NCBI RefSeq assembly: GCF_006345805.1
Contig: NC_043007.1
Span: forward strand, 72,292,001 to 72,356,000
Reading direction: 5' to 3'
DNA: 64,000 bases
DNA from: Octopus sinensis
Taxonomy: Eukaryota
The notes beneath the pieces were generated by a model. The model was not told the origin of the DNA and ran no database searches. It saw only the letters and a list, made by a program, of their open reading frames with translations. Both the position numbers and the translations under genes were made by a program. Positions within the stretch are counted from its first letter, which is position 1; each line of letters starts with the position of its first letter. Below, in pieces: positions 3,660-26,030 of this stretch.

Positions 3660-4545
3660 TTCATCGGTTACATTGACGAAAGTTCCAGTTGATTCAGTCA
3701 ATGGAACAGCCTACACATGAAATTAACATGCAAGTGATTGAGTACTCTACAGACACACGTAATCTTAACGTAATTTTCTGTTGTCAGACGGGAGAAGAGT
3801 ACAGATGTCGTCTGAGTCAATTCTAAAAATTGACCCACCGGATTTCCTCACGGAAGAAGGTAAGAACTGCTCTCTCGTAGTAGCAGCAATTGCAAAAAAG
3901 GTAATATGGAAGACGAGAATGAAAGGCAGACAACATTATCTCTGGTCTCGCCTTGGTGAACGCTTTTACGTTCCATCTGAAAAGGAAGGTGGGGCTGGAG
4001 AGAAGGTGTCTGTCAGAGTGTACGTACAAAAAAATGATGGATGCTTGTTGCACGGATGCTGGGAGTGGAGAGCCCTCCGTGGACACGCTGTAAGGACTTC
4101 CAAAGGGTGTCGGTTAAAAAGACAAGGCTCATGGGGTCGGAGCACACTTGTTTTTTTTAACCTCATATTATCCTTTTATTGTTTGTTTGGTAATTTGCGT
4201 TTCATCCGTTTTCATTTTTATGTAAAATTTCATAATCTCATTCGATGTACATGACCCGCATATCATGTTGTATTGTCCCCCTCTGTGTTGGCCCTTTATG
4301 GGCAATAAAGAAAGGAATCTTAACGTAATTCTCAGGGTGATTCAGCAGGAGACAAAATGTAACAAGGCTGGCCCTCTGAATTGCAGGTACTACCCATTTT
4401 TGTCAGCTGAATGGACCAGTACAACAAGAAATAAAATATCTTGCTCGAGAACGCAACGCACCGCTGGGAATCGAATTCACAACCTTACGATCGAGAGCAG
4501 AATACCTTAACCAATAAAGCACGCGCCTTCACTTGTATCGACTTA
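3660..4545 (-). mobile_element. tRNA-derived SINE family C, interrupted by a LINE fragment
   Basis: Body homologous to 13075-13405 and 52395-52590 (GGAACAGCCT..GAAATTAAC..CTTAACGTA..CAAGGCTGGCCCT). tRNA-like head near 4460-4530. Confidence 0.8.
3776..4315 (+). mobile_element. 5'-truncated Tx1/L1-clade LINE (ORF2 C-terminus plus 3' UTR)
   Basis: 15-bp TSD AATCTTAACGTAATT at 3761-3775 and 4316-4330. Frameshifted peptides VAAIAKKVIWKTR and LVNAFTFHLKRKVGLERRCLSE resemble the Tx1-type ORF2 C-terminal AKxxIWxxR region. A-rich tail ..GGGCAATAAAGAAA. Confidence 0.75.
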
Positions 4546-6015
4546 TGAACATGCACCCAGTATAGTGTTAGTTGCGAGATAAAATCTAAAAACTCTTCTT
4601 TAATGTGTAAACTGACTCCAACCTCAACTTCAATTAAGAGAAGGCAATGTGAAAAAAATCCCATGTAAATTACCAGATAATTGGGATTTTATCATAAGTA
4701 TATTCTCTTTGCTTCAGTGAAGTAAATAATCCATTCTAATCTCATTTTAAAGCCTAAAACGTTGGATTAACTGAAACGGGGGCGGGACACAGTAAATGCT
4801 TCAGAATATTTTGTTCCGGTCTGTTTCTCCCATCCCAAAGATAATTCATTATCCTCTACAATAGATAAGTATCGGTCGTGTTTTGGGTGATCTAACTGAT
4901 TTTACCTCTGTCCTTGAATAACTGCATTGCTGAGAACAAAAAAGAAAGAAAGAAAGAAAAGGAAAAATGATAATAGTAATAATAGTCTATTTCTTATAGA
5001 ACAGCATTTTCAGAAGAAAAAAAATCGGGGAAAAAAAAAACTTGACTGATCTGGGCCCAAAATTGTCCCTGTATCGTTAGCTTTGCTTTCCTTTATTGTG
5101 TTACTTGTAGCATTCATTGGACTGCAGCTATGCTAGGGCATCACCTTCTCTTGTCCAAAGTACATATAACATTATTAACCAATGCCTTCACTGAAGAAAT
5201 AAGTTCTAATTCACACTGCAGCGGCTGAAATGCATTACTGCTGTAGATAAACAATTGCATTATGTCATATCTGACTTAACACATCGTTGTTGAGGACTAT
5301 ACTTTGGTTTCTTCATTCCGTTTTCAACTAGAATTATACACAAGTACAAATGATTTGTTCAATAAAGAATTTGGAATATAAAGCATATCTAAATAGATTT
5401 ATATGATGTACCAACTAATTTATTTCTTTTCAGGCGATTTTTTTTTAACCACAGAGCGGTATATAAAAATTGCACAACAGAACTGAAACAACAGTAAACA
5501 CTGTTTACTTTGTGATTGGTTGGAATAAATAACAATTCTCAGTTTTATTTGATTTATTCTACTCTCCTGGTTAGTATAAACAATTTTCCAATTACGTCAT
5601 TTACAGGATGTTTTCTAAATATAATGAAGCCGAATGGAAATAGGAAGTTGGTCCATCGTTGTTCGCCATTATCCTATCATTCACACGGCGGCAACAGTGA
5701 AATTAGTAACACTCAACTTACGGGTGTAGACGATCTTAATAATGAGTCACATACGAATGGGTGTATATGAACAGCTATTGTAAACATAGTGCTGTTCACA
5801 ATAAAGAGAAATATTTGACACATATATACAATTACTCTAACAATATATTGACATATTTAGCCCACAGTTATTTCAGAAATAGCAATAGATTTAACATATA
5901 GAGACTGAACAGCAAACGCATCGGAATAGACGTAAACGCACATACCAACACAGAGAGTCATTCATACATTTCCTCGCCGGATTACAAACTGTCTTTAGGT
6001 GCAGTTATATACATA

Positions 6016-6186
6016 GGCGCAGGAGTGGCTGTGTGGTAAGTAGCTTGCTAACCAACCACATGGTTCTGGGTTCAGTCCCACAGCGTGGCATCTTGGGCAA
6101 GTGTCTTCTGCTATAGCCCCGGGCCGACCAATGTCTTGTGAGTGGATTTGGTAGACGGAAACTGAAAGAAGCCTGTCGTATATATA

Positions 6187-6228
<42 letters not shown>

Positions 6229-6480
6229 TATATATGTATGTATGTATGTGTGTGTTTGTGTGTCTGTGTTTGTCCCCCTAGCATTGCTTGACAACCGATG
6301 CTGGTGTGTGTTTACGTCCCCGTCACTTAGCGGTTCGGCAAAAGAGACCGATAGAATAAGTACTGGGCTTACAAAGAATAATTCCCGGGGTCGATTTGCT
6401 CGACTAAAGGCGGTGCTCCAGCATGGCCGCAGTCAAATGACTGAAACAAGTAAAAGAGATAAAAGAGAGAGAAAGGAAAA
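6016..6480 (+). mobile_element. tRNA-derived SINE family A, full length, uninterrupted target site
   Basis: A-box-like TGGCTGTGTGG, B-box-like GGTTCAGTCCC, internal (TA)n(TG)n tract, tail ..GACTGAAACAAGTAAAAGAG. Target motif AAGTAGCTTGCT at 6038-6049 is empty. Confidence 0.9.
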
Positions 6481-7334
6481 GAGAGAATAGTACAGAAGCA
6501 ATTTGTTGTTATCTAGTACACATATTACTTCAGACAGAGTTAACGAATCTAAAAAACGTTACATCCTAATGTAAAACAATCGTTCATACTGTACATTACT
6601 TAGATTATAAAAGAACTGAAGACTAACTATTTGCGGGAAGATGTACGATAAATCTGTTACTCTTTAATTTGTTTCAGTCATTTGACTGCGGCCATGCTGG
6701 AGCACCGCCTTTAGTCGAGCAAATCGACCCCAGGACTTATTCTTTGTAAGCCTAATACTTATTCTATCGGTCTCTTTTGCCGAACCGCTAAGTTACGGGG
6801 ACGTAAACACACCAGCATCGGTTGTCAAGCGATGATGGGACGTGGGGGACAAACACAGAGATAAAAACACACACATATATATATATATATATACATATAT
6901 ACGACGGGCTTCTTTCAGTTTCTGTCTACCAAATCCACTCACAAGGCTTTAGTCGGCCCGAGGCTACAGTAGAAGACACTTGCCCAAGGTACCACGCAGT
7001 GGGACTGAACTCGGAACCATGTGGTTGGCAAGCAAGCTACTTTATTTCAACAATTTTGCCACTAGGGCAGCACACAGAGTAGCTACGGGCTGGACAAAGA
7101 CATTAATGGATGATGGTGGTGGTGGATGAAGATGGTGATGGGAGAAGTCAAAAAGCGCCCGCCGACTCTCGCTTCTCTAAAACAATGTTTTTTTTTTTCC
7201 AATAATTTTACAAAATTTCCAAAATTTTACAAAAATTCAAAAATTTGACAAAAATTCCAAATTTTACAATTTACAATTTCAAAAGTTTTTCCAGAGGCAA
7301 TAAACCTCTATCACAATATAACACAAATACAGGT

Positions 7335-8524
7335 TCACGTTACCCGACCGATGAACGCTCTTGCTTTAATGGCGCAATCGTTCTTCGTCAGGTCCCCGCA
7401 TATAGGTATAACTTGCAAGAGATCCTCCGGGAAAGAATTCTCGATCCTGCACATATCATTTTCGAGTAGGACCTCCGCAGCCAGCTGCGAAGGCCACTCG
7501 GGATACTCCATGCAGGACCGCAATCCCTCCCATTGGTTTCTCTTCCTCATCTTACCTATTTCATTCTCTAATGTACCTCCTTTGTAGAAGAGGACTACAT
7601 AATATTTCTCCGGCCCCACAACCGCCGGAGGACACATGGGAGACGCCGTCTGCGTGTTACAATCCGCTGGCGGCGTCCCGTTTCTTTTCTTTCTTTTTTT
7701 CTTTTTACCCTGGGCCACGGGAGGTTGAGGTTCCGGCGTTGCACACGCCGGGTCCACTCTTTCTCCCGTAGCTTCCGGGTCTTTTAGTGGGTCACCATTG
7801 TTTCCCACTTTTCGTTTTCTCGTTGAGGAAGTCACCGCTTCCTCGTTCTGTTTCTCTCCCTCCATTGGTGGGGCAGGGAGAGGCTCTGATATCAACTGCT
7901 CCAGGATCCTACTCTGGTCCCTGGGGCAGTTCTTCTTAATGTGGCCGGTCTCCAAACACAGGTGACACTTGGGGGGGGGCGTCCCTCAAGCATCACCGGA
8001 TACTTGGACCCGGCCATCCTCAAAAAGTCCGGCAAAACCAGACTCTTGGCTGACTGGGTCCATAGAGTCAAAGTAGCCTTTGACCCCTCCCAATCAGCCG
8101 CAGGCTGCATTCTTACGTTCAGGATCTTGGCGCTACCACCACTCAGACCCCGGCGGATAGAATCCTCCACCCACTCGGGCTCAAAGCCGGGTGGCAGGCC
8201 GCAGACCCATAATCTTATTAATTTTTCTCCCTTGTAGCTTGGGAGAAACAAAATCTCTTCGCCCTCAATGGGCTTGCTTGCGAAATTGCAAGCTGCTTTA
8301 GGAGAGTCAAACATCAACCAAATCGTTGCGTATTTGGCTCCCCGTTGAATGTATTTAACGGCTGGCATATAGTCTGCCAGCTCGTTAATAATAGTGGCTT
8401 TCGGAAAAACCATTATGGTGTTGAGTGACTTTGAATAAGTCCTCAATACCACGGTTTTGTCCTCCAGCTCCTTCAGATAACCCTTGGGAGGTGTCAACTC
8501 CCATATGGTTAACTCCTTTGCCAT
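7335..8524 (-). pseudogene. E1 ORF1 (Tx1-like; RRM-like region, CCHC knuckle, C-terminal domain), one frameshift in a C9 run
   Basis: MAKELTIW..TVVLRTYSKS..YATIWLMFDSPKAA..LWVCGLPP..LEGRPP, then after the shift KCHLCLETGHIKKNCP..YPEWPSQLAAEV..stop at 7335. About 396 aa if the frameshift near 7971-7979 is repaired. Confidence 0.85.
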
Positions 8525-8671
8525 AACAAAAGTCCAATAAGAAAAAAACACAATGACAGAACAGAAAGACAGAGCAGAGAAAAGGACGAAGGAAGACAGT
8601 TCAAATAATGGCAACACAGTTCTGCAACTGGTAATCCTCACGAAACAGGGTACTCCAGTTGCAGCACACTC

Positions 8672-8781
8672 GGTTCTCCGTGGCAAATCCAAGCACAATT
8701 GGTTCTCCGTGGTAAATCCAAGCACAATTGGTTCTCCGTGGTAAATCCAAGCACAATTGGTTCTCCGTGGTAAATCCAAGC
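8672..8781. repeat. 29-bp tandem repeat (3.8 copies) in the E1 5' UTR
   Basis: Unit GGTTCTCCGTGGTAAATCCAAGCACAATT at 8672, 8701, 8730 and partial at 8759. Confidence 0.97.
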
Positions 8782-9289
8782 GAACAAATTAATTTTTGAG
8801 GAGGGGCTATGCCTCTCAAAACACACAATTCTCACTAAAAGGTGAGACAATAAATATGCCAACAGGCAGAACAAATACATCCGAAGCAAAGTAAAGCTTA
8901 TTACGCGCAGAAAAGTGTTAACACTAATTAACATTAATGTCAAAAAAGTATTAACGGCAAGCAATAAACCTCACTATGCTTCCAAAAATATCCAAAATGT
9001 CCTACCTGTTGCCGTAAAATGTTCAATATTTCACGTTAACACGTGACATTTGCCGGAGCAGCAAAAAAACACGTCTGAACAGGTCAGAGGCAAGCAAGCT
9101 ACTTACCACACAGTCACTCCTGCACCTATAGCTAAGGATTGTTAACCTTTATCTTAAAGTACTTCGCTTTTTGAAAATACGGAATTCATTTATTCTCAGC
9201 TTCTGTATGTTCAATCTCGTACAAAAGCTGGAAGGTTTCAACAATAATGAACTGCAGTTCTATATTTAAGAGATGAGGAATTATGTACA

Positions 9290-9562
9290 TTATTTACATT
9301 TGACGGATATTTGTCCTCATCTTGTTTGTTGTTAACACAACATTTCGGCTGATATACCCTCCAGCCTTCATCAGGTGTCTTGGGGAAATTTTGAACCTAG
9401 GTTCTCATTCCTAAGGTATTTTTCGATGTTGTTATTATTCAGGTCACTGCCTGGAATCGAACTCGGAATCTCGGGGTTAGTAGCCCGCGCTCTTAACTCC
9501 AATTTTCCGAGTTCGATTCCAGGCAGTGACCTGAATAATAATCCGTCAAATGTAAATAATGA
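9290..9562 (-). mobile_element. tRNA-headed SINE-like element carrying a hammerhead ribozyme, with an inverted partial copy at its 5' end
   Basis: Minus strand GTTAAGAGCGCGGGCTACTAACCCCGAGATTCCGAGTTCGATTCCAGG (tRNA anticodon/T-arm-like). 37-bp inverted repeat 9430-9467 / 9505-9541 and a second arm 9290-9310 / 9541-9562. Confidence 0.65.
9335..9378 (-). ncRNA. Minimal type I hammerhead ribozyme (variant)
   Basis: ACAC-CTGATGA-A-GGCTG-gagggtatat-CAGCC-GAAA-TGT-T-GTGT. Stem I 4 bp, stem II 5 bp with one extra A after A9, near-palindromic stem III, GUU cleavage triplet. Confidence 0.6.
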
Positions 9563-10359
9563 ACTAATTAGTTTCCTTAATGACTAACGGTTCATTAATT
9601 CGCAGCACTTGTGAATGGAATAATAACATATGATACAATATAGGAATTTCACCCTGTGTGTGAGTAACTTTTTATATTATCAAATATGGAAAGATAGCAA
9701 AGATTGACTTTACCTGGATTTGAACTTAGAATATGTAATACTATGACTTAATACCATAAATTAGTTGTTCGATGCTCTGGCATTTCTGTCAATCCACTAC
9801 GAAGACGAAATTGTTGATATAAGAAAATTACAAAATGATAGAACTGCGATGTTAAGCAAATGATTTCTTTCAGACAAGTCTTGTCTGAAAAGTAAAGTGG
9901 ATCGGATAGCTTCAACTAAGTTCTCTTAACCCTAACTCAGAAACAGTGGAAGCAATCTCTGCAATACATTTATGATATATATATATACAAATAAGGATAA
10001 GTTTTGTTTACTTAGATTCAAAGCCCGCAGACAAGGCCCGGAAAATTAAGTATTTATCTAAGACAAAATTTTCTGTCTAAAACAATGGTTTTTGTACCTA
10101 TCATTCACCATTTTTCACATCGGATTGGAATATGCAAATGGAAACAATACGAAATAATAATCAATAAATTCCATACAAAATGTAATCAACTTTTTACAAG
10201 ATCGAAACCTGATCACAATTTTGCCGAAGTATTTCTCAATAAGCATATACAAATTTTATAAATTGTAAACATATTTAGATATTTTTATTGTGTTACTGCA
10301 CCCTACAGAACTCTATTCCAACCTGATTTCTACCTATCTATCTATCTATCTAACTATTT

Positions 10360-12125
10360 TTTTAGATTACTTAGATACGATTCGGCCGAAGTTGGCCCAG
10401 GCCATGTCTAATTTAATAGCACTACCTGGGAGAGATGCACAGTAAGCTCTTGGACACAATAGCCAATTCGAGCAGAGAATTAGTTTTCAGAAACATATCC
10501 GGGTGTGGTTGGTTTGCCTGGTATTTGTCGGAGGCAATCATCTAAGGACCGTTTGAATGCCGTGAAATCACTTCCTCCTTTACGTGGGCTGGCACGATGT
10601 TGAAGAGAGCAGGAACAATTGAGGTGAAATAGTTCTGTCATAGTGTTGTGATAGGATACGCGCATGATTTCTGTAGTGGACATATGGCACGTGGGCCAAG
10701 CCTCGAATGGATTTTAAAGTTGATACATATATCATTTGGGCAATGTTGATGGAATATTTTCCACATCATACAGATGATATAGCACTCACGGCGGCGTTGG
10801 AAGGAATTAAAGCCTGAGCTTTTTGAGTCGATCCCAATAATCAAAGCTTGTCATGTCATTTATTTTTGTGTGTGTGTGTGATTGATCCATGGAGAGCTTC
10901 AATTTTCACAATATTCTGTATCGTGCGGGGTAAGAGCGAGCAAAAGCAGAATAATGGTAGGGGCGTCTCTAGACCGGAAAGTCCTGAGGAACCAGGAGCA
11001 CGCCCTGCGAGCCATGTCAATTTTGCTGTTTATATGAGCACTCCGGGTTATTTTGTTGTCAACAGTAGCACCCAGGTCACTAGTTGGATGCCACGAAGGA
11101 AGAGTGTATGGTTGTTGGAATGCAGTCTCTTTACCGAGGCCAGGTTAACAATACTGGGATTGCTGAAAGCAGAGCAGTATTGTTTCTGCATAATCTCTGC
11201 AGTACTATGGAGAGTGTTGTCTTCCGAAATCAGAGGTCCGACAGATGAGATAGCGACCTTATGATTTTTGGCGAAAGAGAAGAAAACTTTGGGATTGAAT
11301 TTAATTTTCTGGACGGCCCACTTCTCCTCAGTTATTCTTTCATTGGTAATAACAGAATTGAAACAGTTTTGGAGATCAAATTTCTTTGATTCCAGTACAG
11401 CTACGTCTGACAGATGGGAGTGGTGCAGCTGGCAATATTTTAGCCCGTTGATTTTCTTATTTATTCTTTTTAGTTTTCTTATGAGCGCCTTTTTTATTTT
11501 TTTAGGCAGCCTGCATTTTGTTTTGTCCATAGACCGTAGTGGAATGTGGTGTGAACATATGTTTGTGACAGTGTCTACAAATAACTACCACGATGCAGCA
11601 ATGCTACTTGGGGAGAGAGAATCTGTGAAAGACCAATCAACGAGCGAAAGATTGTGGGCGATTTCCTTTCAGTTAGCCTTGTGGAGATCCAAGAGATCAA
11701 AAGGGTGAGCTGGTGCGTGATAGGTTTTTTTTTTTCTAGGCTGCCGAAACTTCAGACTACAAAGAATTATATTGTGGTCTGAGAGGAATTTTCTCCACTG
11801 CAATATCATAGATACTGTTTGTATGGTTACTTAACACTAAGTCCAGGATGTTTTTGTTGAATCTCGTAGGCACGACGAGCACGAGTTGAGGCAGGAAGAA
11901 TTCATTCACGAATTTGAACAGTGATTCCACTGCTGCTTTCTCTGGGGTTGAAATGCACACACTTGTTTTAGTGTATGTGTAGTCCAGTCAATACACGGGA
12001 AATTGAAATCATCCGTCATTAAAATGCCACTGGTTTTGCACTGGTTGATGAAAGACTTGGTTTTCTTGAGGCATTCATCGAAGCATAGTAGTGGCACTTG
12101 GGGGTGGCCTGTAGACCCCAATTAT
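10360..12125 (-). mobile_element. CR1-group LINE remnant (APE endonuclease, tether and C-terminus; RT core deleted)
   Basis: GVYRPP, ILMTDDFNFPCIDW, PTRFNKNILDLVLSN (APE); IKFNPKVFFSFAK..VGPL..QYCSAFSNP (tether); DLGATVD..ARRACSWFLRTF, DYWDRLKKL, QRRRE, FKRSLDDCLRQIPGKP (post-RT). Confidence 0.85.
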
Positions 12126-12262
12126 CACTAAGTGGTTTATTTTATTATGTACAGATAATAATTCACAGTAACCATTGGAGAATGAGATATCTGTATCTGC
12201 AGTAAAAGAACCGCGCAGGAAAACAGCAACAAAGTTTTTTCTTCTATATTCAACTCCACTAG

Positions 12263-12492
12263 GGCGGCGAGCTGGCAGAAACGTTAGCGCGCCGGACGAA
12301 ATGCTTAGCGGTATTTCGTCTGTCTTTACGTTCTGAGTTCAAATTCCGCCGGGGTCGACTCTGCCTTTCATCCTCTCGGGGTCGATAAATAAAGTACCAG
12401 TTTCGCACTGGGTCGATATAATCAACTTAATCCCTTTGTCTGTCCTTGTTTGTCCCCTCTATGTTTAGCCCCTTGTGGGCAATAAAGAAATA
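12263..12492 (+). mobile_element. SINE family B (tail type 1)
   Basis: Full head to tail; TSD TATATTCAACTCCACT on both sides. Confidence 0.9.
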
Positions 12493-12624
12493 TATATTCA
12501 ACTCCACTCTTTCACTCCCTTTAGAATAATGTAAGAGTTTCCAACAGCCATATTTTTGTGGATTATGCTTCTGATTGATTTTTTTGTTTTTTAACATCAT
12601 AAATCTTACGAATAAAAGCTAGCC

Positions 12625-12820
12625 TAGTGGTTAGGGTGTTCTACTTACGATCGCTGAGATCGGGGGTTCGATTCCCGGACCAGGCGACGCGTTGTGTTCT
12701 GGAACAAAGCACTTTATTTCATGATGCTCTGCGATCATTTCGACATTTGACGTGTGGCACACTTGCGCAACTGTACAGGCAACGTCTGATAGAGGGAAGG
12801 CGCTCGTGTACAGCACATAT
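12625..12820 (+). mobile_element. tRNA-derived SINE family D fragment
   Basis: TAGTGGTTAGGGTG..GGTTCGATTCCCGGACC A/B-box-like head; similar head at 33780-34020. Confidence 0.65.
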
Positions 12821-13074
12821 ATTTGATGACTCTAAACAGATCATTTTTGCAGGTCGTTCAGCAAAGAGAGAGCGCTCGTACGTCGATAATTTGTAGTATT
12901 TTCCAGACCTTTTATAGCTCACTCTTTCTTCTACGATCTTGTAGCCTTGATGGTAAATAATTATTTGCACTTAACATATTGGGTTTTTAGACTATTTGTC
13001 TAAGCCAGGCTTTCTTTCCTTTTACTTCTTCCTTTTGTTTATAATGTATGCTCTTACTTTTCACTCTGATGAAA

Positions 13075-13405
13075 ATCTGTTGCCTTAATTTCGAATGCCC
13101 GATCAACGGAACAGCCTACTCGTGAAATTAACGTTAAGGGTACACGTGTACCCTTAACGTAGTTCTGGGGAAGATTCAGCGTGACACAGAGTGTAACAAG
13201 GCTGGCCCTTTGAAATGCAGGTACAACAAAAACAGGAAGAAAGATTAAGAGAAAGTTGTAATGAAAGAGTACAGCAGAGTTCGCCACCCCGCCACCTCTG
13301 CCGGAGCTGCGTATGACTTCAGGTGTTTTCGCTCAATAAACACTCGCAACGCCCGGTCTGGGAATCGAAACCGCGATCCTACGACCGCGAGTTCGCTGTC
13401 CTAAC
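13075..13405 (-). mobile_element. SINE family C
   Basis: Reverse complement starts GGAGACGCAATGGCCAAGTGGTTAGGACAGCG..GGTTTCGATTCCC; the head matches 54400. Confidence 0.85.
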
Positions 13406-13500
13406 CACTTGGCCATTGCGTCTCCACATACTCATGATGTAAAAGGATAAAATTAATGAAAATTTTATTAGTGGCCAGCATATAAAAAAACCTAAAGACA

Positions 13501-13950
13501 TCGAAAAAAGTTTTCTTTGCCTATATGCTGAAAATAGACGCTAAATCGTGAAACCACGTTAAAATATCTTCAATATCATAATTACACACGTGTCGAAACG
13601 AGGGAACAAGTTAATAGGAATTCATAAATTTTAGTTATCTCTGGATCGGATCACTTTCTGGATTAGCCTAAAAAGGTTTTTCTTTCATCTGCTGATAAAG
13701 GAAAACAGGGTTATCCTTCATCGGCCATTGAAAGAAAAACCTTTTTAGGTTAATCCAGAAATTGGTACGATCAATCAAGGAGAAATCTTTTTAAGTTAAT
13801 TCAAAAATTGGTCCAATCCAGAGATTTATGAATTCCTGTTAGCATGTTTCCTCGTTTCGACACGTGTGTAATAATAATATTGAAGATATTTAACGTTGTT
13901 CGACATTTTAGCGTCTATTTTCAGCATATAAGCAAAAATATTCTCTTCGA
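13501..13950. mobile_element. Fold-back/MITE-like element with long inverted arms
   Basis: Arms of about 190 bp, e.g. GCTGAAAATAGACGCTAAA / TTTAGCGTCTATTTTCAGC and ACACACGTGTCGAAACGAGG / CCTCGTTTCGACACGTGTGT. Confidence 0.8.
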
Positions 13951-14269
13951 AGCCCTTATTTATAATTATAATTATATTTCCTCGTTGACAGGCCACTGGT
14001 ATTTACAGAGTGTAAAACACTTTCGGTATACAAATTAGGGACTCCTTCGTAGAGTAACTGCTGCATTTGTTGAGTATATAAGCAGTTTGGCTGCTTGTTT
14101 CTCTGGAGAGTGTCAGAATAACGTAGACGCCTCTGGTGGGAACCCAATAAGGTTCTAAAATTGATTAAGGTTGTTCATCATATTTTTTTCAGTCTGCGGA
14201 GAAATAGCTAAAATTTGTCTGCTTATAATTATACCATATGTTACATATTATTATCTCATACCTTTATAT

Positions 14270-14280
14270 ATGTGTGTATA

Positions 14281-14329
<49 letters not shown>

Positions 14330-14337
14330 ATATGTGT

Positions 14338-14379
<42 letters not shown>

Positions 14380-14505
14380 TCTTCCATGGAATCTGGATGT
14401 TTTGTTGTCTCTTTTTGTATCACCTAGTTGTCCGGATGTTTTGCGCTCTTGTCCCATCTGACACACACACACACACACACACTCACTCACTCACTCACTC
14501 ACTCA

Positions 14506-14579
<74 letters not shown>

Positions 14580-14590
14580 TATATATATCG
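14270..14590. repeat. Compound (TA)n/(TG)n/(CA)n/(CACT)n microsatellites
   Basis: Direct observation. Confidence 0.95.
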
Positions 14591-14964
14591 CGCACGTTCC
14601 GTGAGTATTTATTCAAGGCAAGCAGTTGGTGACGTGTATGTAGTAAAGCACACAGAAAAATAAACGAACCACAGGCGCGTGACTGAGCTGGAGGTAGAAT
14701 TACTTTTGCCTTTATAGCGCGTAAAGAAAACGTTGTTGCAGGAATGTACGCAGCACGTGTACTACAGCAGTACTATGCCTAGTTTTAAAACTAAGATTGG
14801 CAGGGGCGAATTGTGCCTATCTAATCTACAAAAATATATATATTTTGCATTGTATGCATAATAATCACAGTAATCTTCATAGTTTTAGGAAAATGTTACT
14901 ATCGATTTATTTCATTCAGGGTAGGCACTGCCTACCTTGTCTACCTAGGCGACACGTCCCTGAT

Positions 14965-14965
14965 A

Positions 14966-15051
<86 letters not shown>

Positions 15052-15137
15052 CATATACATATATATATATATATGCATACATATATATATATATATTATA
15101 TATATATATATATCTACATACATATATATATATATGC

Positions 15138-15170
<33 letters not shown>

Positions 15171-15197
15171 ATATATATAATATATATATATATATGC

Positions 15198-15268
<71 letters not shown>

Positions 15269-15277
15269 TATATTATT

Positions 15278-15308
<31 letters not shown>

Positions 15309-15310
15309 TA
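14965..15310. repeat. (CT)n-(TA)n-(TAT)n compound microsatellite
   Basis: Direct observation. Confidence 0.95.
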
Positions 15311-16199
15311 TTTCGACACAGAAAAGATGAAAGGCAAAGTCAACCTCGGCGGAATTTGAACTCACAACGTAAAATGCACGAAATGGCGCGCCAGCTCGCC
15401 GCCCTTTTTGTCACTTATGTATTATTAACAAAAGATAATAACTGCTTTAGAAAGGTAGTGAATCATACTTTCAGAACGATTTGCAGGCCAAGTGAAATAA
15501 CAAGGTGTACGTAGATACATACCGGGAATTATGATATTATATTTCATCTAACACACACTCACACAGATAATGGCCAACGGGCGTGTCCTTACAGTGTCGC
15601 TAGAAATTCTAGAAATAGTAGAAGAATCTCTGTGAAATAATACCCAACTATCTTTAAAAAAAGAAAGACATATTGATGGTCATGGCTGGAATGTTTATGA
15701 TAGTAGGTTTCTTTTTTCAGGGTTGCTCTGGAAAAAATAATATATATATCCTCTTTCTATTACGCACACGCCACACACACACACACACACACACACACAA
15801 CACACACACACACACACACTCTCTCTCACACACACACACACAAACAAACAAACGCACATTCTTTCGCATGCACACATTCATATACAAGACAAATTCAAAC
15901 TCAGTATAATGGAGAACGAGATAATTAAATGCGTAATCAACAAGGAAAACAACAGGCAAATAAAATAAAAGGGGAAATAAGAGGAGGAGGAAGAAGATGA
16001 TTATGGTGGTGGTGGTGATGATGATGATGCTCCTCTTCGGTATCCATACAACTCTGGCAGCTGTAAAAGACAGTTTTCCGTACAATATGCCAGGATTTGC
16101 CAACTAAATTGTTATCAGATATCCGAGTTAAGGAAAGATAATATAGACGTGACATCGAATCACTCGTGGAAAGTATTATTATTAATACTATTATTATTA

Positions 16200-16230
<31 letters not shown>

Positions 16231-16703
16231 GTTGCTGTTGTTGTGTTGTTGTTGTTGTTGTTGTTGTTATTCGAGAAAACCGTCCATACACATATACACT
16301 TACAGGCACATACGTACATTTTGCACCAAATCACTGCAATATAGTATGTGATATGGGCTTTCTTGCGGTGGTTGAAAGATTTAGCAGGAACGAATCTGCT
16401 TCTAACCCAGATGTTTAATCCTGCAAGTTTCAGTGAAGAAAAGATAATAATATTGACAGCGTATGACTCACATGGAATGGAACGTGCTTTCTGAAAAAGA
16501 AAATGTTTTGTGCGAGAATTTCACTCCAGACACTGAATTATAAATAAAGTAAAGGAATAAGGATTTATCTCAGCTGCAGAAACTCTTTATTTTGTTTGTA
16601 GGAGAACGTTAGACACAAATTACAGCCAGGTGGACTGAGCTGACACACGTTATGTCTTCTCAACAATGGATATAGGGCTTTTCTAGTATAGTTTTCCATT
16701 CAC

Positions 16704-17062
16704 AAGTGCTTTGCTGAAAAACACCATACGTCTCTCGGTCCAGGAATCGAAACCTCAATCTTACGATCATGAGCCCAACACCCTATTCCATTAAGCTATG
16801 CGCCTCCAAAAAATCCTTTGGCCCGAGGCTATAGTAGAAGGCACTTGCCCAAGTTACCACGCAGTGGCACTTAACTCAGTACCATGTTGTTAGGAAGCAA
16901 ACTTCTGATCACACTGCAGCTCTGAAGCCATAATGTTCATCATCACAAAGGATTTTTTGGAGGCGCATAGCTTAATGGAATAGGGTGTTGGACTCATGAT
17001 CGTAAGATTGAGGTTTCGATTCCTGGGCCGGGAGACGTATGGTGTTTTTCAGCAAAGCACTT
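16704..17062. repeat. Near-perfect 117-bp inverted repeat of a SINE head, 125-bp spacer
   Basis: 16704-16820 is the reverse complement of 16946-17062 with few mismatches. Confidence 0.9.
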
Positions 17063-17571
17063 CATTTCAGTATAGTTTCACTATAGTGATAGCTCTTCAT
17101 TCAACCTTGTGTGATTCTGCACACGCAAACGTATATACACACGAACACACACACATACACGCACACACAGACACGTGTTGGGAATCTTTTGTAAAGGTGA
17201 TACCCAACACCAGGATAGGCCGATTGCCCGTCTTTCCAGAAGCTGCCTTTTGTTTGCTTTTTAGGCAGGTCCGCCATCCATCGTCATCATGTTACTCATT
17301 TTTGTCAGCTGAGAGAAATGGAGCAACGTGAAATGATATTTTGCGGAAAAAATTCCACGTATCTCCCGGGCCAGGAATCGAAACTTCAGTGTTGCGATTA
17401 TGAATCCAACACCCTAGCCACTAAGCCATGCGCCTTCAAGGAATCCTTTGTTTCCAGAGTGGTGCAGGTGTTACTGTGTGGGAAGAAGTTTGCTTCCCAA
17501 CCACATAGTTCCGAGTTAAGTCCCACCCTTGTGGGTGGATTTAGTAGACGGAAACTGGATGAATCTTGTCG

Positions 17572-17627
<56 letters not shown>

Positions 17628-18298
17628 GCGTGTGTGTGTGTGTTTGTGTTTGTGTCTGTGTATCTTCACTACTACTGCTTGACAACTAGTGTTCCTATGC
17701 TTACGTCCCAGTAACTTAGTGGTTCGACAAAAACGCAACAGGCTTTCACAAAATATGGGACTGATTCATTCGACCAAAAAATTTTTCAATACGACGCCCC
17801 AGCATGACCGCAATCTAACGACTAAAATAAATTAAAGGGCGGATGTGTTTCGTACGGAGCGAATTGTTATATGACAGCTATGGCACGCGCTCAGTAATCG
17901 AAAGAGACGGGCCAAGATAATTGGTGGACAGGTCTAATCTGAAGCTGAGCTTTGGAGTAGATTTCCTTGACCTACAGACAGAATTAAGTTGAACCTTATA
18001 AGCTAAGTCCTACGTGGTTTAAGATAGAATTGTACAGTACAGTAATATAGACATTTGTCATCTACAGTGGCCTCTTGTCGACCAGAGCAGGGTGGAAAAG
18101 GTACTAGCTACTTGATGTACCGTGTCAAGGAATTTTAGTTAGTATTCAAGCCCTAATGCTGATAACAATCATTTCTTAACGGAAAAATTCAGTCCAGACT
18201 AGGCATGTGAAAATAAACCCGAATTTTTGTAAAACCAAAATTAATTAAACATGGAATTTAGTAAAGAATAAACATAATCTTTAGTTGTGCAGGGACAA

Positions 18299-18339
18299 CT
18301 TCGGACATGTTTCAGTCCTCTTAGACTTCATCAGCGAAG
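18299..18339 (-). ncRNA. Minimal type I hammerhead ribozyme, canonical core
   Basis: CTTCG-CTGATGA-AGTC-taagag-GACT-GAA-ACATGT-C-CGAAG. Stem I 5 bp, stem II 4 bp, palindromic stem III ACATGT, GUC cleavage triplet. Confidence 0.8.
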
Positions 18340-18839
18340 CAAAGGCTAATCATTACTTCAGACCTTAGGCGAAAAGAGACAGATTTTTTCCCGGGTAAAG
18401 GGGAAGTATGAAAGGCAAGAAATGTACAAAAGTCCATTAACGGACAGTTGTTTTCTTCATGAACTGAAAACCATCGTACAGTTTAACTCAACCACTTAAT
18501 CTCTGGGTATGTTTAGACTGTTGGCAACTGGGCCATCTCGCCAGTATTCACATAACTGTATTCTGTATACTCATAAATATCCCTACTGTTTCAGACGCTC
18601 CGAATAGAGCCACAAGAATTTATACTTCTCTTCTCATTAAACCATTGAATAGAATTCAATTGTTGATTAATTTATCGTAGTCACTGACATACCAGAGTTG
18701 TTTCTAACTTAGAATATTTACTTTCAGTAAAGTGGTGAGAGCCTCTCATACTATGCAATCCCTGTAATGTGTATCATAAAATAAAAGTTAAGCGATTGAG
18801 TTATATATATATATATATATATATATGTAATTAAGTTAA

Positions 18840-19035
18840 TCAGACATGAAAACACAAAGAGAAAACACAACAACGCGGGGACGTGGCACAAATATAGTAT
18901 TATTGGACGCTCAGGAAGGAGGGAAGAGGAAGGTTAACGTTTCGAGCGGAGCTTCTTCGTCAGAAACATAGGAAAAGGAAAGATCCAGAGAAGGAAAGAC
19001 GGAGGAAAAAAATCGCCAACGGTACACACGCGGTA
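18840..19035 (-). mobile_element. Short Penelope-like repeat with a degenerate hammerhead motif
   Basis: GTTT-CTGACGA-A-GAAGC-tcc-GCTC-GAA-ACGT-T-AACC at about 18932-18967, flanked by (TA)n. Penelope assignment is inferred from the hammerhead type. Confidence 0.45.
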
Positions 19036-19045
19036 TATATATATA

Positions 19046-19111
<66 letters not shown>

Positions 19112-19114
19112 TAT

Positions 19115-19148
<34 letters not shown>

Positions 19149-19192
19149 CATATGTATATATTATATATATATGTACATATATGTATATATAT

Positions 19193-19227
<35 letters not shown>

Positions 19228-19288
19228 CATATTATATATGTATGCATATATATGTACAGATATATATATGTATATGTATATATATATA

Positions 19289-19343
<55 letters not shown>

Positions 19344-19444
19344 ATATATTTGTAGAAATGGTAAGGCACAAAAGAATGAAAGAGACCTCGATATTATGTA
19401 AATAGAGGAATTTATCTGTAAATGTAATATGTGACATTTATTCG

Positions 19445-19631
19445 GTAGCCATGATAAAACTCTGAGTTTCAGTGTCGGGGTGGAATCCACACCGCCATCT
19501 CTTCCGTTATCCGGCCATCGGAAAAAAATGGTATGAAAATCATAGCATTTTTTCCGATGGCCGGATAACTGAAGAGATGGCGGCGTGGATTTCCACCCTG
19601 ACATCCGAAACTCAGAGTTTCATCAGGCTAC
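19445..19631. repeat. About 187-bp near-perfect hairpin
   Basis: GTAGCC..AAACTCTGAGTTTC..CCGCCATCTCTTC..CCGGCCATCGGAAAAAAATG paired with its reverse complement; the centre TATGA-AAA-TCATA also pairs. Confidence 0.95.
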
Positions 19632-20080
19632 GACAATTGATTACATATATTATCACATATATTACATTATATATATATATATATATATATTATTTGTTTC
19701 AGTCATTTGACTGCGGCCATACTAGAGCACCGTCTTTAGTCGAAGAAATCTACCCCAGGACCTATTCTTTACACGCCCAATACTTATCCTATCGGTCTCT
19801 TTTGCCGAACCGCTAAGTTACGGGGACACGTAAACTCACCAACATCGGTTGTCAAGCGATGGTGGTGGGGGCAAACACAGACACACAAACATACACATAA
19901 TATACCTCGTTGCAGTTACCACTAGCGTCAATAGTCGAAATATATATACCGGGCGGGGAATGCTGAAAGAGTCGAAGGACGTGGAAATCAGACGTAACCA
20001 CCAGAGGTGAAAACACCCAGGAAGTGGAAAGCAGAAGCAGAGACTGATATATGTATAATGTGTTTTGATATTATATATAT

Positions 20081-20129
<49 letters not shown>

Positions 20130-20164
20130 TCTATTTGGATGTTTTGCGTTCTTGTCCCATTTTG

Positions 20165-20223
<59 letters not shown>

Positions 20224-20479
20224 GTAGTATGTATGTATGTATGTATGTATGCATGCATGTATATAGGCCCCAACCAAACCCTGTGCCACACCAGGAAGGG
20301 CATTTCATCAAAAAACAATACTATGAAATGTCTGGTAAGACATAAGAGAATTTTTCATTGCGAGATTTTAGGGTTGAATCAGATAATCACTCCTGAAAGT
20401 CTACTGTCATTAACTTCAACGTTTGAAGACTGTTTTGGATAGAAAACATCCTGCATTAATAAACCACTGGAAGCGGTGG

Positions 20480-20764
20480 GAGTGGTTCTCAACCGGGGTC
20501 CATATAACCCCTGGGGGGGTCCATGCAAACAAAATAGTAAATTGGGACCTAGAGTCCAGGAAAAGTTTTGCTTTAGATGTATTTATTGCAAGAAACGGCC
20601 GTAGGTAAACCTAGACAAGTTAATGTGTGAAAAATAAAATGGGAATTTTGAAAGAAGTATCTATAAAAACAGTTTTTAAACATTGAGTGGTTGTGGGGGC
20701 ACACCCAAAATAGAATAGTACTCAAAGTAGTCCATAGATTTAAAAAAATAGCTGAGAACCACTG
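20480..20764. mobile_element. hAT (Charlie-like) MITE
   Basis: Terminal inverted repeats (g)AGTGGTTCTCA / TGAGAACCACTG; right flank ATCTAGAT resembles the Charlie target; left TSD not preserved. Confidence 0.55.
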
Positions 20765-21169
20765 ATCTAGATAATGCTCATACTCACACTGCACAAGTCA
20801 TTAAAAATGTTCTCGAATTATTCGAATCGAGAAAATGCTATCATCATACTTATCAGACCTCGCTCCATTAAACTTTCACTTATGTAGGTTATGCAGGTCC
20901 TTGCAAAACCGCATAGACAGGAAAAGTAGGGTTATCAAAGAAAGCAGAAAAATATATAAGCCAAGTAAAAGAACTTTACAAATCAGGCATTAAAAAAATT
21001 CTAAAAGTGAAAAGATAGAACGTGAAGGGAATTATAAAATTGATTAAATTCGCAGAAGTAAATATGTCTTTTTTTCACATACACTCTTAAAATAGAACTT
21101 ACTATACAATTTGATATTATATAATACAATATACTATGTCATACTATAATATGCATATGCTCTTTTACT

Positions 21170-21522
21170 CTTTTACTTGTTTCAGTCATTTGACTGCGGC
21201 CATGCTGGAACACCGCCTTTAGTCGAGCAAATCGACACCAGAGCTTATTCTTTGTAAGCCTAGTACTTATTCTATCGGTTTCTTTTGCCAAACTGCTAAG
21301 TTACGAGCACGTAAACACACCAGCATCAGTTGTCAAGCGATGTTGGAGGGACAAACAGACACACAAACATATACACACGCATACATATACATGCATACAT
21401 ACATAAATACATACATACATACATACATGCATGCATGCATGCATACATACATACATACATACATACACACACACATACACACACACACATACACAAACAC
21501 ACTCACACACACATACACACAC

Positions 21523-21576
<54 letters not shown>

Positions 21577-21700
21577 GACGAATTTCTTCCAGTTTCCGTC
21601 TACCAAATCAACTCACAAGGCTTTGGTCGGCCCGAAGCTATAGTAGAAGACACTTGCCCAAGGTGCCATACAGTGGAACTGAACCTGGGACTATGTAGCA
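21170..21700 (-). mobile_element. SINE family A with expanded internal microsatellite (head truncated)
   Basis: Family A tail and body flank about 230 bp of (TA)n/(CA)n/(TACA)n. Confidence 0.85.
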
Positions 21701-21904
21701 CACGCATGCAGCAATGCATACATACACTCATAGATATCACGCATACGCACAAGTGTAATACGTATATCTATCTATCTATCTATCTATCTATCTACCTCTA
21801 TATAGATTTTTTATTCTTTTATTCTTTTACTTGTGTCAGTCATTTTGACTGCAGCTATACTGGAGCACCGCCTTTAATCGAATAAATAACATATATATAT
21901 ATAT

Positions 21905-22190
21905 TATATATATTCACCTTCGAAACGCAGAGTAGATGAAACCATGGCGACTGAAGAAGGGGACTTTTCCTTGTGTTATTTGTTCTGTTCTCTATTTTTT
22001 CGTTATTTAAGAAAAATGTCCAGTTCTTTGGTTTTGTGTTTATGTTTTCGTTTGTCATTGTGTTCGACGTTTTTTTGGTGTCCTGTACCCATATATGCAT
22101 GCATATATACATGTAGAGGTAGGTACGTACATATATGTATGTATATATGCATATGTTTTATTTATTAATTTATTATATATATATATATAG
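21905..22190 (+). mobile_element. Repeat copy 1 (Penelope-like non-coding repeat); inverted copy at 27770-28135
   Basis: CCTTCGAAACG..GAGTAGATGAAAC..CTGAAGAAGGGGA..TGTTCGACGTTTTTTTGGTGTCCTGTACCC shared with 27770-28135 on the opposite strand. Confidence 0.7.
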
Positions 22191-22382
22191 ACGTTTACTC
22201 ATGCAAACAAATGTAACTCATACACATACGCGCATATAGTTCTGTAGATATGTATACGTCAATGTATAAACGAGATTATCATCATTTAAAGCAATAATTC
22301 GCCAATATGAAGTTATTCATGCAGATAAAAAAAATTCTGTAAACATAACCGCAGGAGTGGCTGTGTGGTAAGTAGCTTGCTT

Positions 22383-23847
22383 CCGGTTACCCAGAGTGCA
22401 ATTGGTTTGTCGTTTGTTGCGAGTCGAACGGTTTTCCTTTGCTGCTTTGAGGTTAGTAATGTACTCGGACCTTAGCGGGTCTGAGCTGTCTTCTTCAGAG
22501 GAGGAGCTGCTGAGAGCAGTAGAAGGCATGGATGAATATTTGACGAAATCGAAGAGTTTCGCAGAGGCTGTGGAGGTGAAGAGAAAAGAGGTGGATTTAT
22601 CAAGAATGAAGGAGCATGGAAAACTGGTGCAGAAAGTGGGTGGCAACGTGACGTTGTCACCCCCACAAAGAATAATGGATGGCATGAACAGAAGAACGGT
22701 CATATACAAAGTTTACTCGATAAAGAGTAAGACGGTCGACCTAATAGAAATAGAGAACATAGAAAAGGCAGTAAAGGAGGAATCCAACGGAGTAATATAT
22801 ATGACAAGAGGATGCCAATATGGGATAATGGTAGTCCAGTTTAGAACAAAGGAGGAGGCAAAGAGGCTGGCGAGTAAAACAGTAAAGACGAAGGAAATGG
22901 TCCTTCTACCAACGTATTTTGGAAGAAGGACTTCCAAGATAAGGGTAGAAGGAATTCCGCCTGATATAAATGTGGCTTGGGTAGCGGCAGCTGTCCTTGT
23001 TGGAACCGAGGGGAAAGTGGCTGTCCTCCAAGCCACAGAAGCAGAAGAAGGAGGGTGGAAAGGAAGGACGCTCGAGTTAATTATTCAGACGGAGGAGGAA
23101 CAACTCGAGAACTCGGCAGAGACTGTGACGCTGGGGGAAATCGTGCTGAGGGTGTGGGTAGAGGGCAGACTACCACGTTGTTTTAAATGTGGCCAAAAGG
23201 GCCACATTAGAGCATACTGCCCTCTACGAAGGACTATGGCTGAGGATATAGTTGCGGAGACAGAAGAGAAAAGAGAGGAAGACAAAATAGACGGAGGAAA
23301 CAATAAAAAGGAGGAAGAATGGAAAATTGCAGAGCACAAAAGGAGAAAGAGGAAAAAAAGAAAAGACACTGAGTATGATGTGACACCCCAGTCCAACCCC
23401 ATCCCACCCAAGACCACTCAGACCCACCCTCCCCATACAGACACCAAACCCACCCACGTTATTTCCCCTCAAGAAAAAAAGAAAAAGAAAGAACAGACAC
23501 CACAAAATTTAGAAGACCCCACCTCCCGGTGAAAAAGGTTATGAATGCATGACGGAGAGAATGTTATCATTAAGTGACAGCAAAAAGGGAAAAAGGATTG
23601 GACGAAAAGAGAAAAAGGACTCAGGATCCAGAGACAGCGAGTTGTATTACTCAGTGTGGGTTGAGTAGCACACTCTTCATAATATCATTTTCAGATATCA
23701 TTCATATTATCATATTTTAATTTGTTCTTCATGTGCATTTTCATATTCATTCATTATATCATATTTTATTTTTTAATTGTTATATGTCCCGACATGTGTT
23801 GTAGTGTCCCCTCTGTGTATTGCCTTTATGGCAAATTTAATAAAATA
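22383..23847 (+). mobile_element. E2: ORF1-only (HAL1-like) Tx1-type non-autonomous retroelement
   Basis: 13-bp TSD AAGTAGCTTGCTT at 22370-22382 and 23848-23860; single ORF; 3' UTR resembles that of LINE 3776-4315; ends ..TGTCCCCTCTGTGTATTGCCTTTATGGCAAATTTAATAAAATA. Confidence 0.9.
22459..23532 (+). CDS. E2 ORF1, Tx1-like gag-type nucleic-acid-binding protein (357 aa from the first ATG)
   Basis: Uninterrupted frame: acidic/coiled-coil-like N-terminus, RRM-like YGIMVVQFRTKEEAKRLAS, KIRVEGIPP, CCHC knuckle EGRLPRCFKCGQKGHIRAYCP, basic low-complexity tail. Another frame stays open to about 23667, so the native C-terminus may be longer. Confidence 0.85.
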   Translation: MYSDLSGSELSSSEEELLRAVEGMDEYLTKSKSFAEAVEVKRKEVDLSRMKEHGKLVQKVGGNVTLSPPQRIMDGMNRRTVIYKVYSIKSKTVDLIEIENIEKAVKEESNGVIYMTRGCQYGIMVVQFRTKEEAKRLASKTVKTKEMVLLPTYFGRRTSKIRVEGIPPDINVAWVAAAVLVGTEGKVAVLQATEAEEGGWKGRTLELIIQTEEEQLENSAETVTLGEIVLRVWVEGRLPRCFKCGQKGHIRAYCPLRRTMAEDIVAETEEKREEDKIDGGNNKKEEEWKIAEHKRRKRKKRKDTEYDVTPQSNPIPPKTTQTHPPHTDTKPTHVISPQEKKKKKEQTPQNLEDPTSR

Positions 23848-23864
23848 AAGTAGCTTGCTTACCA

Positions 23865-25782: not shown

Positions 25783-26030
25783 TAACTTAGCGGTTTGGCA
25801 AAAGAGACCGATAGAATAAGTACTAGGCTTACAAAGAAACGTCCTGGGGTCGATTTCCTCGACTAAATGCAGTGCTCCAGCATGGCCACAGTCAAATGAC
25901 TGAAACAAAGAGTAAAAGAATAACCCTAAATAAAAGGTGATTTTTACCCGTTCGCATACACCTAGATGTATTCATGTACACAAGTGTGAGTACATACATA
26001 CATACATACATACATACATACATACATACA

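Follow-up and report, generated by a model that had tools for sequence, protein, structure and literature searches.

Retrotransposons of the Tx1 clade, which lack long terminal repeats (non-LTR), are long interspersed elements (LINEs) that target repeats, other transposons included. Tx1L inserts into the transposon Tx1D, Keno into U2 genes, Mutsu into 5S, Kibi and Koshi into microsatellites and Tx1-Mar into Mariner-N4_AMi (PMC4494074). The first open reading frame (ORF1) of the Tx1-like type in animals encodes a Type I protein (ORF1p) with RRM domains and a CCHC knuckle (PMC5203782), and in Octopus vulgaris 13 recently active L1-Tx1 families are recorded (PMC13282606). Two further systems have ORF1 without a reverse transcriptase. 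HAL1 (half-L1) of mammals is a non-autonomous LINE derivative which retains only ORF1 and amplifies as such (PMC5753468). HeT-A at the telomeres of Drosophila is likewise restricted to Gag/ORF1, has no reverse transcriptase of its own and uses a defined target (PMC5537684). Here we analyze a stretch of 64,000 nucleotides of Octopus sinensis DNA (contig NC_043007.1, positions 72,292,001 to 72,356,000; called the window below) with three ORF1-only retroelements, E1, E2 and E3, which interrupt copies of a short interspersed element (SINE), termed SINE family A. We find that these elements and their relatives enter the SINE head at one and the same nucleotide, and we suggest that they are probably mobilized by the enzymes of a partner LINE.

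Insertions at one nucleotide of a SINE head

The empty reference copy of SINE family A lies at 6008–6455 (+), and in this copy the target would fall between positions 6037 and 6038. E1 (7043–9089, minus strand) is a full-length element of 2047 bp with a 5′ untranslated region (5′UTR) of ~565 nt, ORF1 and a 3′UTR of ~290 nt. Its 5′UTR contains a tandem repeat (8663–8781 (-), 29 bp, 4.1 copies, 96% matches). On the minus strand the SINE head (9106–9131, matched by BLAST to positions 6–42 of the reference copy and including the equivalent of the A-box-like TGGCTGTGTGG) ends in ...GGAGTGACTGTGTGGT and is followed by the 16 bp AAGTAGCTTGCTTGCC (9105–9090) and then by E1. The element terminates with ...GGCAAAATTGTTGAAATA, next to which stand the second copy of the 16 bp (7042–7027) and the SINE remainder AACCACATGGTTCC..., that is, body, microsatellite and tail (6650–7026). 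Read directly, the 5′ junction is ...GGCTGTGTGGT AAGTAGCTTGCTTGCC/TCTGACC... and the 3′ junction ...TTGAAATA/AAGTAGCTTGCTTGCC AACCACATGG..., with the slash at the border of the element.

E2 (22383–23847 (+), 1465 bp) is also full-length. The SINE family A head at 22340–22369 (+) precedes a 13 bp duplication, AAGTAGCTTGCTT (22370–22382), and the junctions read GGT AAGTAGCTTGCTT/CCGGTTACC... and ...AATAAAATA/AAGTAGCTTGCTT. The 3′ copy of this duplication (23848–23860) forms the first 13 nt of AAGTAGCTTGCTTACCA (23848–23864 (+)), which as a whole is the 17-nt 5′ duplication copy of E3. E3 (23865 to ~25782 (+)) is an older element of the E1 group whose reading frame is broken by stops and frameshifts. 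A deletion at ~25782 took its 3′ end together with the adjoining middle of the SINE, and the 3′ part of the SINE resumes at 25783–25910 (+; tail positions 53–181, 91% identity). Since E2, E3 and the SINE 3′ part follow each other in this order, one SINE copy hosts both elements in a stack. A first reading of the window, made from the sequence only, had already proposed that E1 and E2 share one target nucleotide with duplications of 16 and 13 bp and that E3 follows a 17-nt copy of the same target; both proposals agree with the junctions given here. It was also right that E2 splits a SINE of family A, whereas the remainder of the SINE does not directly follow E2, as E3 intervenes. In the simplest history E3 inserted first with its 17-bp duplication, and the nick was then used again by E2 in the upstream copy of this duplication. 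The intact reading frame of E2 beside the decayed E3 fits this order. E1 and E2 are not duplicates of each other, as the sequence-only reading had considered likely, because the identity between the two ORF1 proteins is as low as 26% (E = 2e-24).

Further loci were reached through homologues of ORF1 or through the 3′ tail, and both routes are blind to the target. Altogether we examined ~154 kb of sequence with seven insertions. At locus L002 (O. sinensis) an E3-like element follows ...GGCTGTGTGGTAAGTAGCTTGCTT/CCTGTGCATGCGT. At L004 (O. vulgaris, ~8629–10613) an E1-like element is flanked by AAGTAGCTTTCTCACC and AAGTAGCTTGCTAACC, and its 3′ junction, ...TTGAAATA/AAGTAGC, is the same as that of E1. 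At L003 (O. bimaculoides) we found a 5′-truncated, tail-only copy of ~140 bp with a 3-bp duplication (...GGCTGTGTGGTAAG/CAGAGTTCGGCGGGCG...GAAATA/AAGTAGCTTGCTT). Thus six of six independent insertions of the E1, E2 and E3 types (E1, E2, E3, L002, L004 and L003) use the same nucleotide of family A, GGT^AAGTAGC. At this site the duplications have lengths of 3, 13, 16, 16 and 17 bp, and the elements invariably meet the SINE at ...AAATA/AAGTAGC on their 3′ side. The seventh insertion, an E2-like element of 1597 bp at L001 (O. sinensis), interrupts a member of another SINE family, termed B. The site is GAGCTGGC^AGAAAYGTTAGCACGCCG (within the SINE, GGC^AGAAAC), with an 18-bp duplication. All seven ORF1-only insertions are in SINE heads and every one has the orientation of the SINE.

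SINE family A heads provide only ~9e-5 of the position and orientation slots in the 154 kb. The probability that three further copies, found blindly, all occupy the family A slot is ~7e-13, which excludes chance. The E1 and L004 elements are 97% identical and lie at separate loci. Their host SINE bodies are 92% identical, a value within the range of random pairs of family A copies (mean 85%, maximum 96%), and nothing in L004 matches the sequence upstream of E1. Together these comparisons show that E1 and the L004 copy are not orthologues. Across the insertions, the differing duplication lengths also speak for independent events. A fixed 3′ junction combined with variable duplications and 5′ truncation is the signature of target-primed reverse transcription. 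The sequence-specific, target-primed insertion put forward by the sequence-only reading is therefore supported, with fixed orientation and in three Octopus species.

The four family A copies that had been listed as empty (at 6038, 32335, 42945 and 45605) are indeed without insertion. The contrast drawn from them, between occupied AAGTAGC and empty AAGAAGC or AAATAGC copies, turned out to be uninformative, as many perfect sites are empty as well: in 51 kb of O. vulgaris (L004), 11 or more heads match GTGGTAAGTAGCTTGC perfectly and have no insertion, and so the subfamily contrast carries no information on occupancy.

In the SINE head an A-box-like motif (TGGCTGTGTGG, 10 of 11 positions) and a B-box-like motif (GGTTCAGTCCC, 9 of 11) were recognized by eye. 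ARAGORN finds no tRNA in the head and Rfam gives no tRNA match. Judged from the two motifs a tRNA origin of the head is plausible, and for octopus SINEs such an origin has been published (Ohshima and Okada 1994, as cited in PMC4758252). The insertion point falls between the two motifs. As the insertion separates them, the family would act as one parasite that inactivates the copies of a second.

An ORF1-only element family

The full-length copies measure 2047, ~1985, 1465 and 1597 bp. The same layout of 5′UTR, ORF1 and a 3′UTR of ~300 nt is present in E1/L004, E3/L002, E2 and L001, that is, in at least four lineages and in three species. No copy contains a second long open reading frame, nor is there a remnant of ORF2 between ORF1 and the tail. 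In the window the open reading frames of at least 170 amino acids are ORF1 pieces of E1–E3 and low-complexity frames, and no long frame resembles a reverse transcriptase. The ORF1-only form amplifies as such, as seen from the two 97% identical copies at separate loci.

Protein queries with the E2 ORF1, the E1 ORF1 and a profile retrieved eight proteins, all of them ORF1-like or chimeric gene models and none a reverse transcriptase. An ORF1 profile search of 1.84 billion representatives returned 226 homologues at E <= 1e-10, mostly short; of ten that were looked up eight are from octopods, and the two longest come from ENA/JGI contigs. A Pfam scan of the ten longest of the 226 detected no reverse transcriptase domain and no apurinic/apyrimidinic endonuclease (APE) domain. 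P0141 and P0154, two long relatives of ORF1, gave no match in metagenome scans, and none of the encoding contigs of P0001, P0002 and P0004 could be recovered. The elements had been called HAL1-like in the sequence-only reading. This holds for the ORF1-only structure without reverse transcriptase; the poly(A) tail and the dispersed insertion of the L1 type (TT^AAAA) are not found, for the elements end in ...GAAATA and are site-specific.

The ORF1 protein

ORF1 of E1 (7335–8524 (-)) conceptually encodes ~395 amino acids with a pair of RRM-like domains, a CCHC knuckle and a region at the C-terminus. The frame is broken once, by a +2 frameshift due to two extra bases in the homopolymer run at 7971–7979. 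The L004 copy does not have this frameshift and is mostly open, with a stop ~19 codons before the end of the E1 frame. In E2 the ORF1 (22459–23532 (+), 357 amino acids) is intact and shows the same tandem RRM-like domains and CCHC knuckle. Intact frames are thus present in E2 and in the L004 copy. E3 has several stops, and its ORF1 is ~80% identical in amino acids to P0006, the O. sinensis copy in L002. The E2 protein is 41% identical to that of the L001 element.

In both E1 and E2 the zf-CCHC domain of Pfam scores just below the curated cut-off of 20.8 bits (the two scores are 20.3 and 16.4), and the spacing CX2CX4HX4C was recognized by reading. In the AlphaFold model of E2, residues 70–250 form two βαββαβ units (predicted local distance difference test (pLDDT) 73–88), and the best fold matches of the model in the PDB are tandem RRM proteins (among them IMP3 RRM12, raver1 and hnRNP A1 UP1). 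By predicted fold and motif, ORF1 is of Type I with RRM domains and a CCHC knuckle, a feature which is not exclusive to Tx1.

Between the ORF1 of E1 and of L004 we count 15 synonymous and 18 non-synonymous differences. The ratio of non-synonymous to synonymous rates (dN/dS) is 0.34 (P = 0.003 against neutrality), which shows that ORF1 is under purifying selection. Hence the ORF1 protein appears to matter for propagation.

Protein matches of ORF1 are confined to entries of O. bimaculoides, O. sinensis and O. vulgaris, and among the homologues further away is one of Argonauta hians. At 5660–7100 of L003 (O. bimaculoides) lies a remoter ORF1 relative (the P0005 region); its 5′ boundary is blurred and its 3′ end is in an assembly gap, which makes it uninformative on the target. 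The P0005 region, P0004 and the longer homologues P0014, P0035 and P0124 have a C-terminal motif, Y..LK...GD..D.PG, in common. Two gene models, P0002 (O. bimaculoides, A0A0L8GU38) and P0007 (O. vulgaris), fuse pieces of ORF1 elements to host exons with C2H2 zinc fingers and a SAM domain. These fusions are probably annotation chimeras from intronic or adjacent element copies.

A 3′ tail shared with SINE family B and with a longer element

The last ~75 nt of E1 (7043–7117 (-)) are homologous to the tails of E2, of SINE family B and of a fragment at 3779–4315. E1 and E2 agree in 28 of the last 37 nt when positions are counted back from their ends (P ~6e-8), and the rest of the two 3′UTRs is 47% identical in a gapped global alignment. 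The gapped global alignment of the tails is unconvincing on its own; the position-locked ungapped comparison and an alignment of nine sequences are convincing. In the 154 kb nhmmer identifies 25 such tails, which belong to 18 copies of SINE family B, six ORF1-only elements and the fragment 3779–4315.

SINE family B is exemplified by the copy at 12263–12491 (+; GGCGGCGAGCTGGCAGAAWCGTTAGC...), which has its own duplication, ATATTCAACTCCACT. This copy and 17 others in the window, L001 and L004 are dispersed and often adjoin (TA)n tracts. The fragment (3779–4315 (+), 537 bp) belongs to a longer, 5′-truncated coding element that is not of the ORF1 type. It is flanked by 18-bp duplications (3761–3778 and 4316–4333, AATCTTAACGTAATTYTC) and lies antisense within the body of a third, tRNA-like SINE. 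Its open frame (...AAIAKKVIWKTRMKG...) is unrelated to ORF1. In the simplest interpretation it is what remains, at the 3′ end, of a 5′-truncated autonomous LINE, and it would be a candidate for the shared partner or for a close relative of the partner.

Two subtypes of the tail can be distinguished. The subtype TGGCAAAWTT...GAAATA (E1, E2, L003 and L004) pairs with SINE family A. In L001 the tail is similar to those of SINE family B and of the fragment (TGGRYAAATAAAGAAAT), and this subtype pairs with SINE family B and with dispersed sites. Because the ORF1 of E2 is nearer to that of L001 than to that of E1, the target follows the tail and not ORF1. Such a pattern is what mobilization in trans by two related partner subfamilies would predict.

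In six places a SINE family B tail is joined directly to an internal position of SINE family B, in four cases to position 48 and in two to position 15 (window 44526/44527, 44961/44962 and 48474–48476; L004 36695, 36879 and 38541). Position 15 is the nick site of the ORF1-only element in L001. These junctions might be insertion hot spots in which the 5′ side was joined through homology. As host heads are not visible upstream, dimeric SINE families or template switching would explain them equally well, and we base no conclusion on them. The window also contains a decayed LINE fragment (10480–12121 (-)), the 3′ end of which is microsatellite-like and unrelated to the shared tail family. The fragment includes FNFPCIDW and PTRFNKNILDLVLSN, which resemble motifs of an APE-type endonuclease, and a putative start of the reverse transcriptase region. 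Three palindromic inverted repeats that resemble MITEs are also present in the window, at 9432–9541, 13516–13936 and 19477–19598; their arms measure 48–68 nt and are 88–91% complementary.

Proposed mechanism

We consider it likely that E1–E3 belong to a site-specific ORF1-only family which enters SINE heads by target-primed insertion and which borrows reverse transcriptase and endonuclease in trans through the shared tail. The insertion would proceed as follows. The elements form a diversified, non-autonomous non-LTR family of Octopus that has retained only an ORF1 with tandem RRM-like domains and a CCHC knuckle. A LINE, plausibly of the L1/Tx1 group, would recognize the ~75-nt tail and supply an APE-type endonuclease and a reverse transcriptase in trans, and the ORF1p of the element may coat its own RNA. 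The bottom strand of the SINE head would then be nicked at a fixed spot, GGT^AAGTAGC of family A for the lineages of E1, E3 and E2 and GGC^AGAAAC of family B for an E2-like lineage. The synthesis of cDNA would begin from the conserved 3′ tail of the element, and a variable second nick would produce the duplications of 3–18 bp. The insertions would land in a very abundant and presumably neutral site.

In this scheme we infer the mobilization in trans, the origin of the specificity from the endonuclease of the partner and the L1/Tx1 type of the partner, whereas the junctions and their independence, the ORF1-only architecture, the conservation of ORF1 and the shared tail can be read directly from the sequences. 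A partner of the Tx1 clade is plausible from the type of ORF1, with RRM domains and CCHC knuckle, and from the L1-Tx1 families in octopus. Duplications of 13–18 bp are compatible with an APE-type LINE, without being proof of one.

Several observations weigh against this proposal. Protein, profile and metagenome searches yielded no full-length partner, no reverse transcriptase and no endonuclease. The open frame of the fragment 3779–4315 has no match by Pfam or BLAST, and it is a putative C-terminus of an ORF2 by a resemblance to L1/Tx1-like motifs. SINE family B belongs to the same tail family and is nevertheless widely dispersed, so that the endonuclease of one common partner cannot alone explain the strict use of the site. 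A hairpin of 4–5 bp in the tail (TGCC...GGCA) is no better than those in shuffled sequences. Finally, the sample is small, with seven insertions in ~154 kb.

The dispersal of SINE family B also gives room to another explanation, in which the element itself picks the target: its ORF1p would bind the SINE head and recruit the enzyme of the partner, or a read-through RNA would anneal to SINE copies. SINE family B has the tail and is dispersed, while seven of seven ORF1-only insertions are in SINE heads, and the purifying selection on ORF1 points in the same direction. There is also a precedent, as the Gag of HeT-A, an element without reverse transcriptase, is needed for telomere targeting (PMC5537684). 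On the other hand, the tail subtype tracks the target, and two partner subfamilies account for the data equally well. Moreover, E1 and E2 use the same nucleotide with ORF1 proteins that are 26% identical, whereas E2 and L001, at 41%, use different SINEs; the target is therefore not set along the phylogeny of ORF1. By analogy with HeT-A we keep this explanation as an unlikely one that still deserves attention. If true, ORF1p or read-through RNA would steer a borrowed, loosely specific LINE enzyme, a Gag-directed targeting of the HeT-A kind acting on interspersed repeats. It would then explain both why family B is dispersed and the ORF1-only insertions are not, and why ORF1 is conserved in an element stripped of all else.

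Two other explanations question whether there is a family, or repeated insertion, at all. LINE copies are often rearranged, and the elements might be dead-on-arrival, internally deleted products of full-length site-specific LINEs instead of a family which propagates itself. This we hold to be very improbable in view of the same ORF1-only layout in four or more lineages that have diverged and in three species, the pair of 97% identical copies with the same structure at different loci, the dN/dS of 0.34 and the lack of an ORF2 remnant between ORF1 and tail. It is scarcely credible that SINE head, element and SINE body were copied as a composite unit, by SINE-type retrotransposition, segmental duplication or gene conversion, with the site merely inherited. 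The 16-bp duplications which E1 and the L004 copy have in common would fit such a unit. Against it stand the different duplications (3, 13, 16, 16 and 17 bp) and 5′ ends of the elements, host SINE bodies no closer than random pairs, the stacking of E2 and E3 in one SINE and outer flanks that are unrelated; in addition RNA polymerase III would stop at T-runs inside the elements. The composite unit is by this evidence largely refuted already. We therefore maintain borrowed enzymes and target-primed insertion as the probable mode of propagation of the ORF1-only family.

Comparison with known systems

With these elements SINE heads join the safe-harbour targets of site-specific non-LTR retroelements. 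The ORF1-only lineage has diversified (down to 26% identity in ORF1), has shifted its target from one SINE family to another and persists in different species of Octopus. The tail is present in three passengers with differing specificity, which offers a natural system to separate the roles of tail recognition, endonuclease and ORF1p. The family should be of interest to transposon biologists, and more so if ORF1p proves to set the target. A full-text search of a collection of papers, Repbase and Dfam aside, revealed no description of an ORF1-only non-LTR family specific for SINE heads.

With the target-specific Tx1 LINEs the octopus elements have in common the precise insertion into a multicopy repeat, the fixed orientation and the Type I ORF1. 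A further likeness is that the target is also used by non-autonomous passengers, for instance by SINEU in the case of Tx1-Mar (PMC4494074). Unlike Tx1 LINEs, the octopus elements have neither reverse transcriptase nor endonuclease, their target is the head of a SINE, and they carry a specific, non-poly(A) tail which is shared with a SINE. Common 3′ tails are known from pairs of SINEs and LINEs with stringent recognition (Ohshima and Okada 2005, as cited in PMC4758252). Here the ~75 nt are common to the ORF1-only elements, to SINE family B and to a coding element of greater length, and in contrast to the known pairs one of the passengers codes for a protein and is site-specific.

The elements resemble HAL1 as LINE derivatives that are reduced to ORF1 and amplify in this form. 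HAL1, however, is an L1 derivative whose ORF1 is of Type II, which ends in a poly(A) tail and which shows no site specificity (PMC5753468), whereas the octopus elements are strictly site-specific and without poly(A) tail. HeT-A, which relies on TART or TAHRE as partner, would be the closer analogue, being both Gag-only and target-specific; for the octopus elements a supply of reverse transcriptase in trans is suggested by the shared tail. The differences are that HeT-A belongs to the Jockey clade, has a host function and is added to chromosome ends without an internal nick, whereas the octopus elements enter SINE copies that are interspersed in the genome and produce duplications there. The octopus family is not a new kind of element but extends the known behaviour of site-specific retroelements to a new target.

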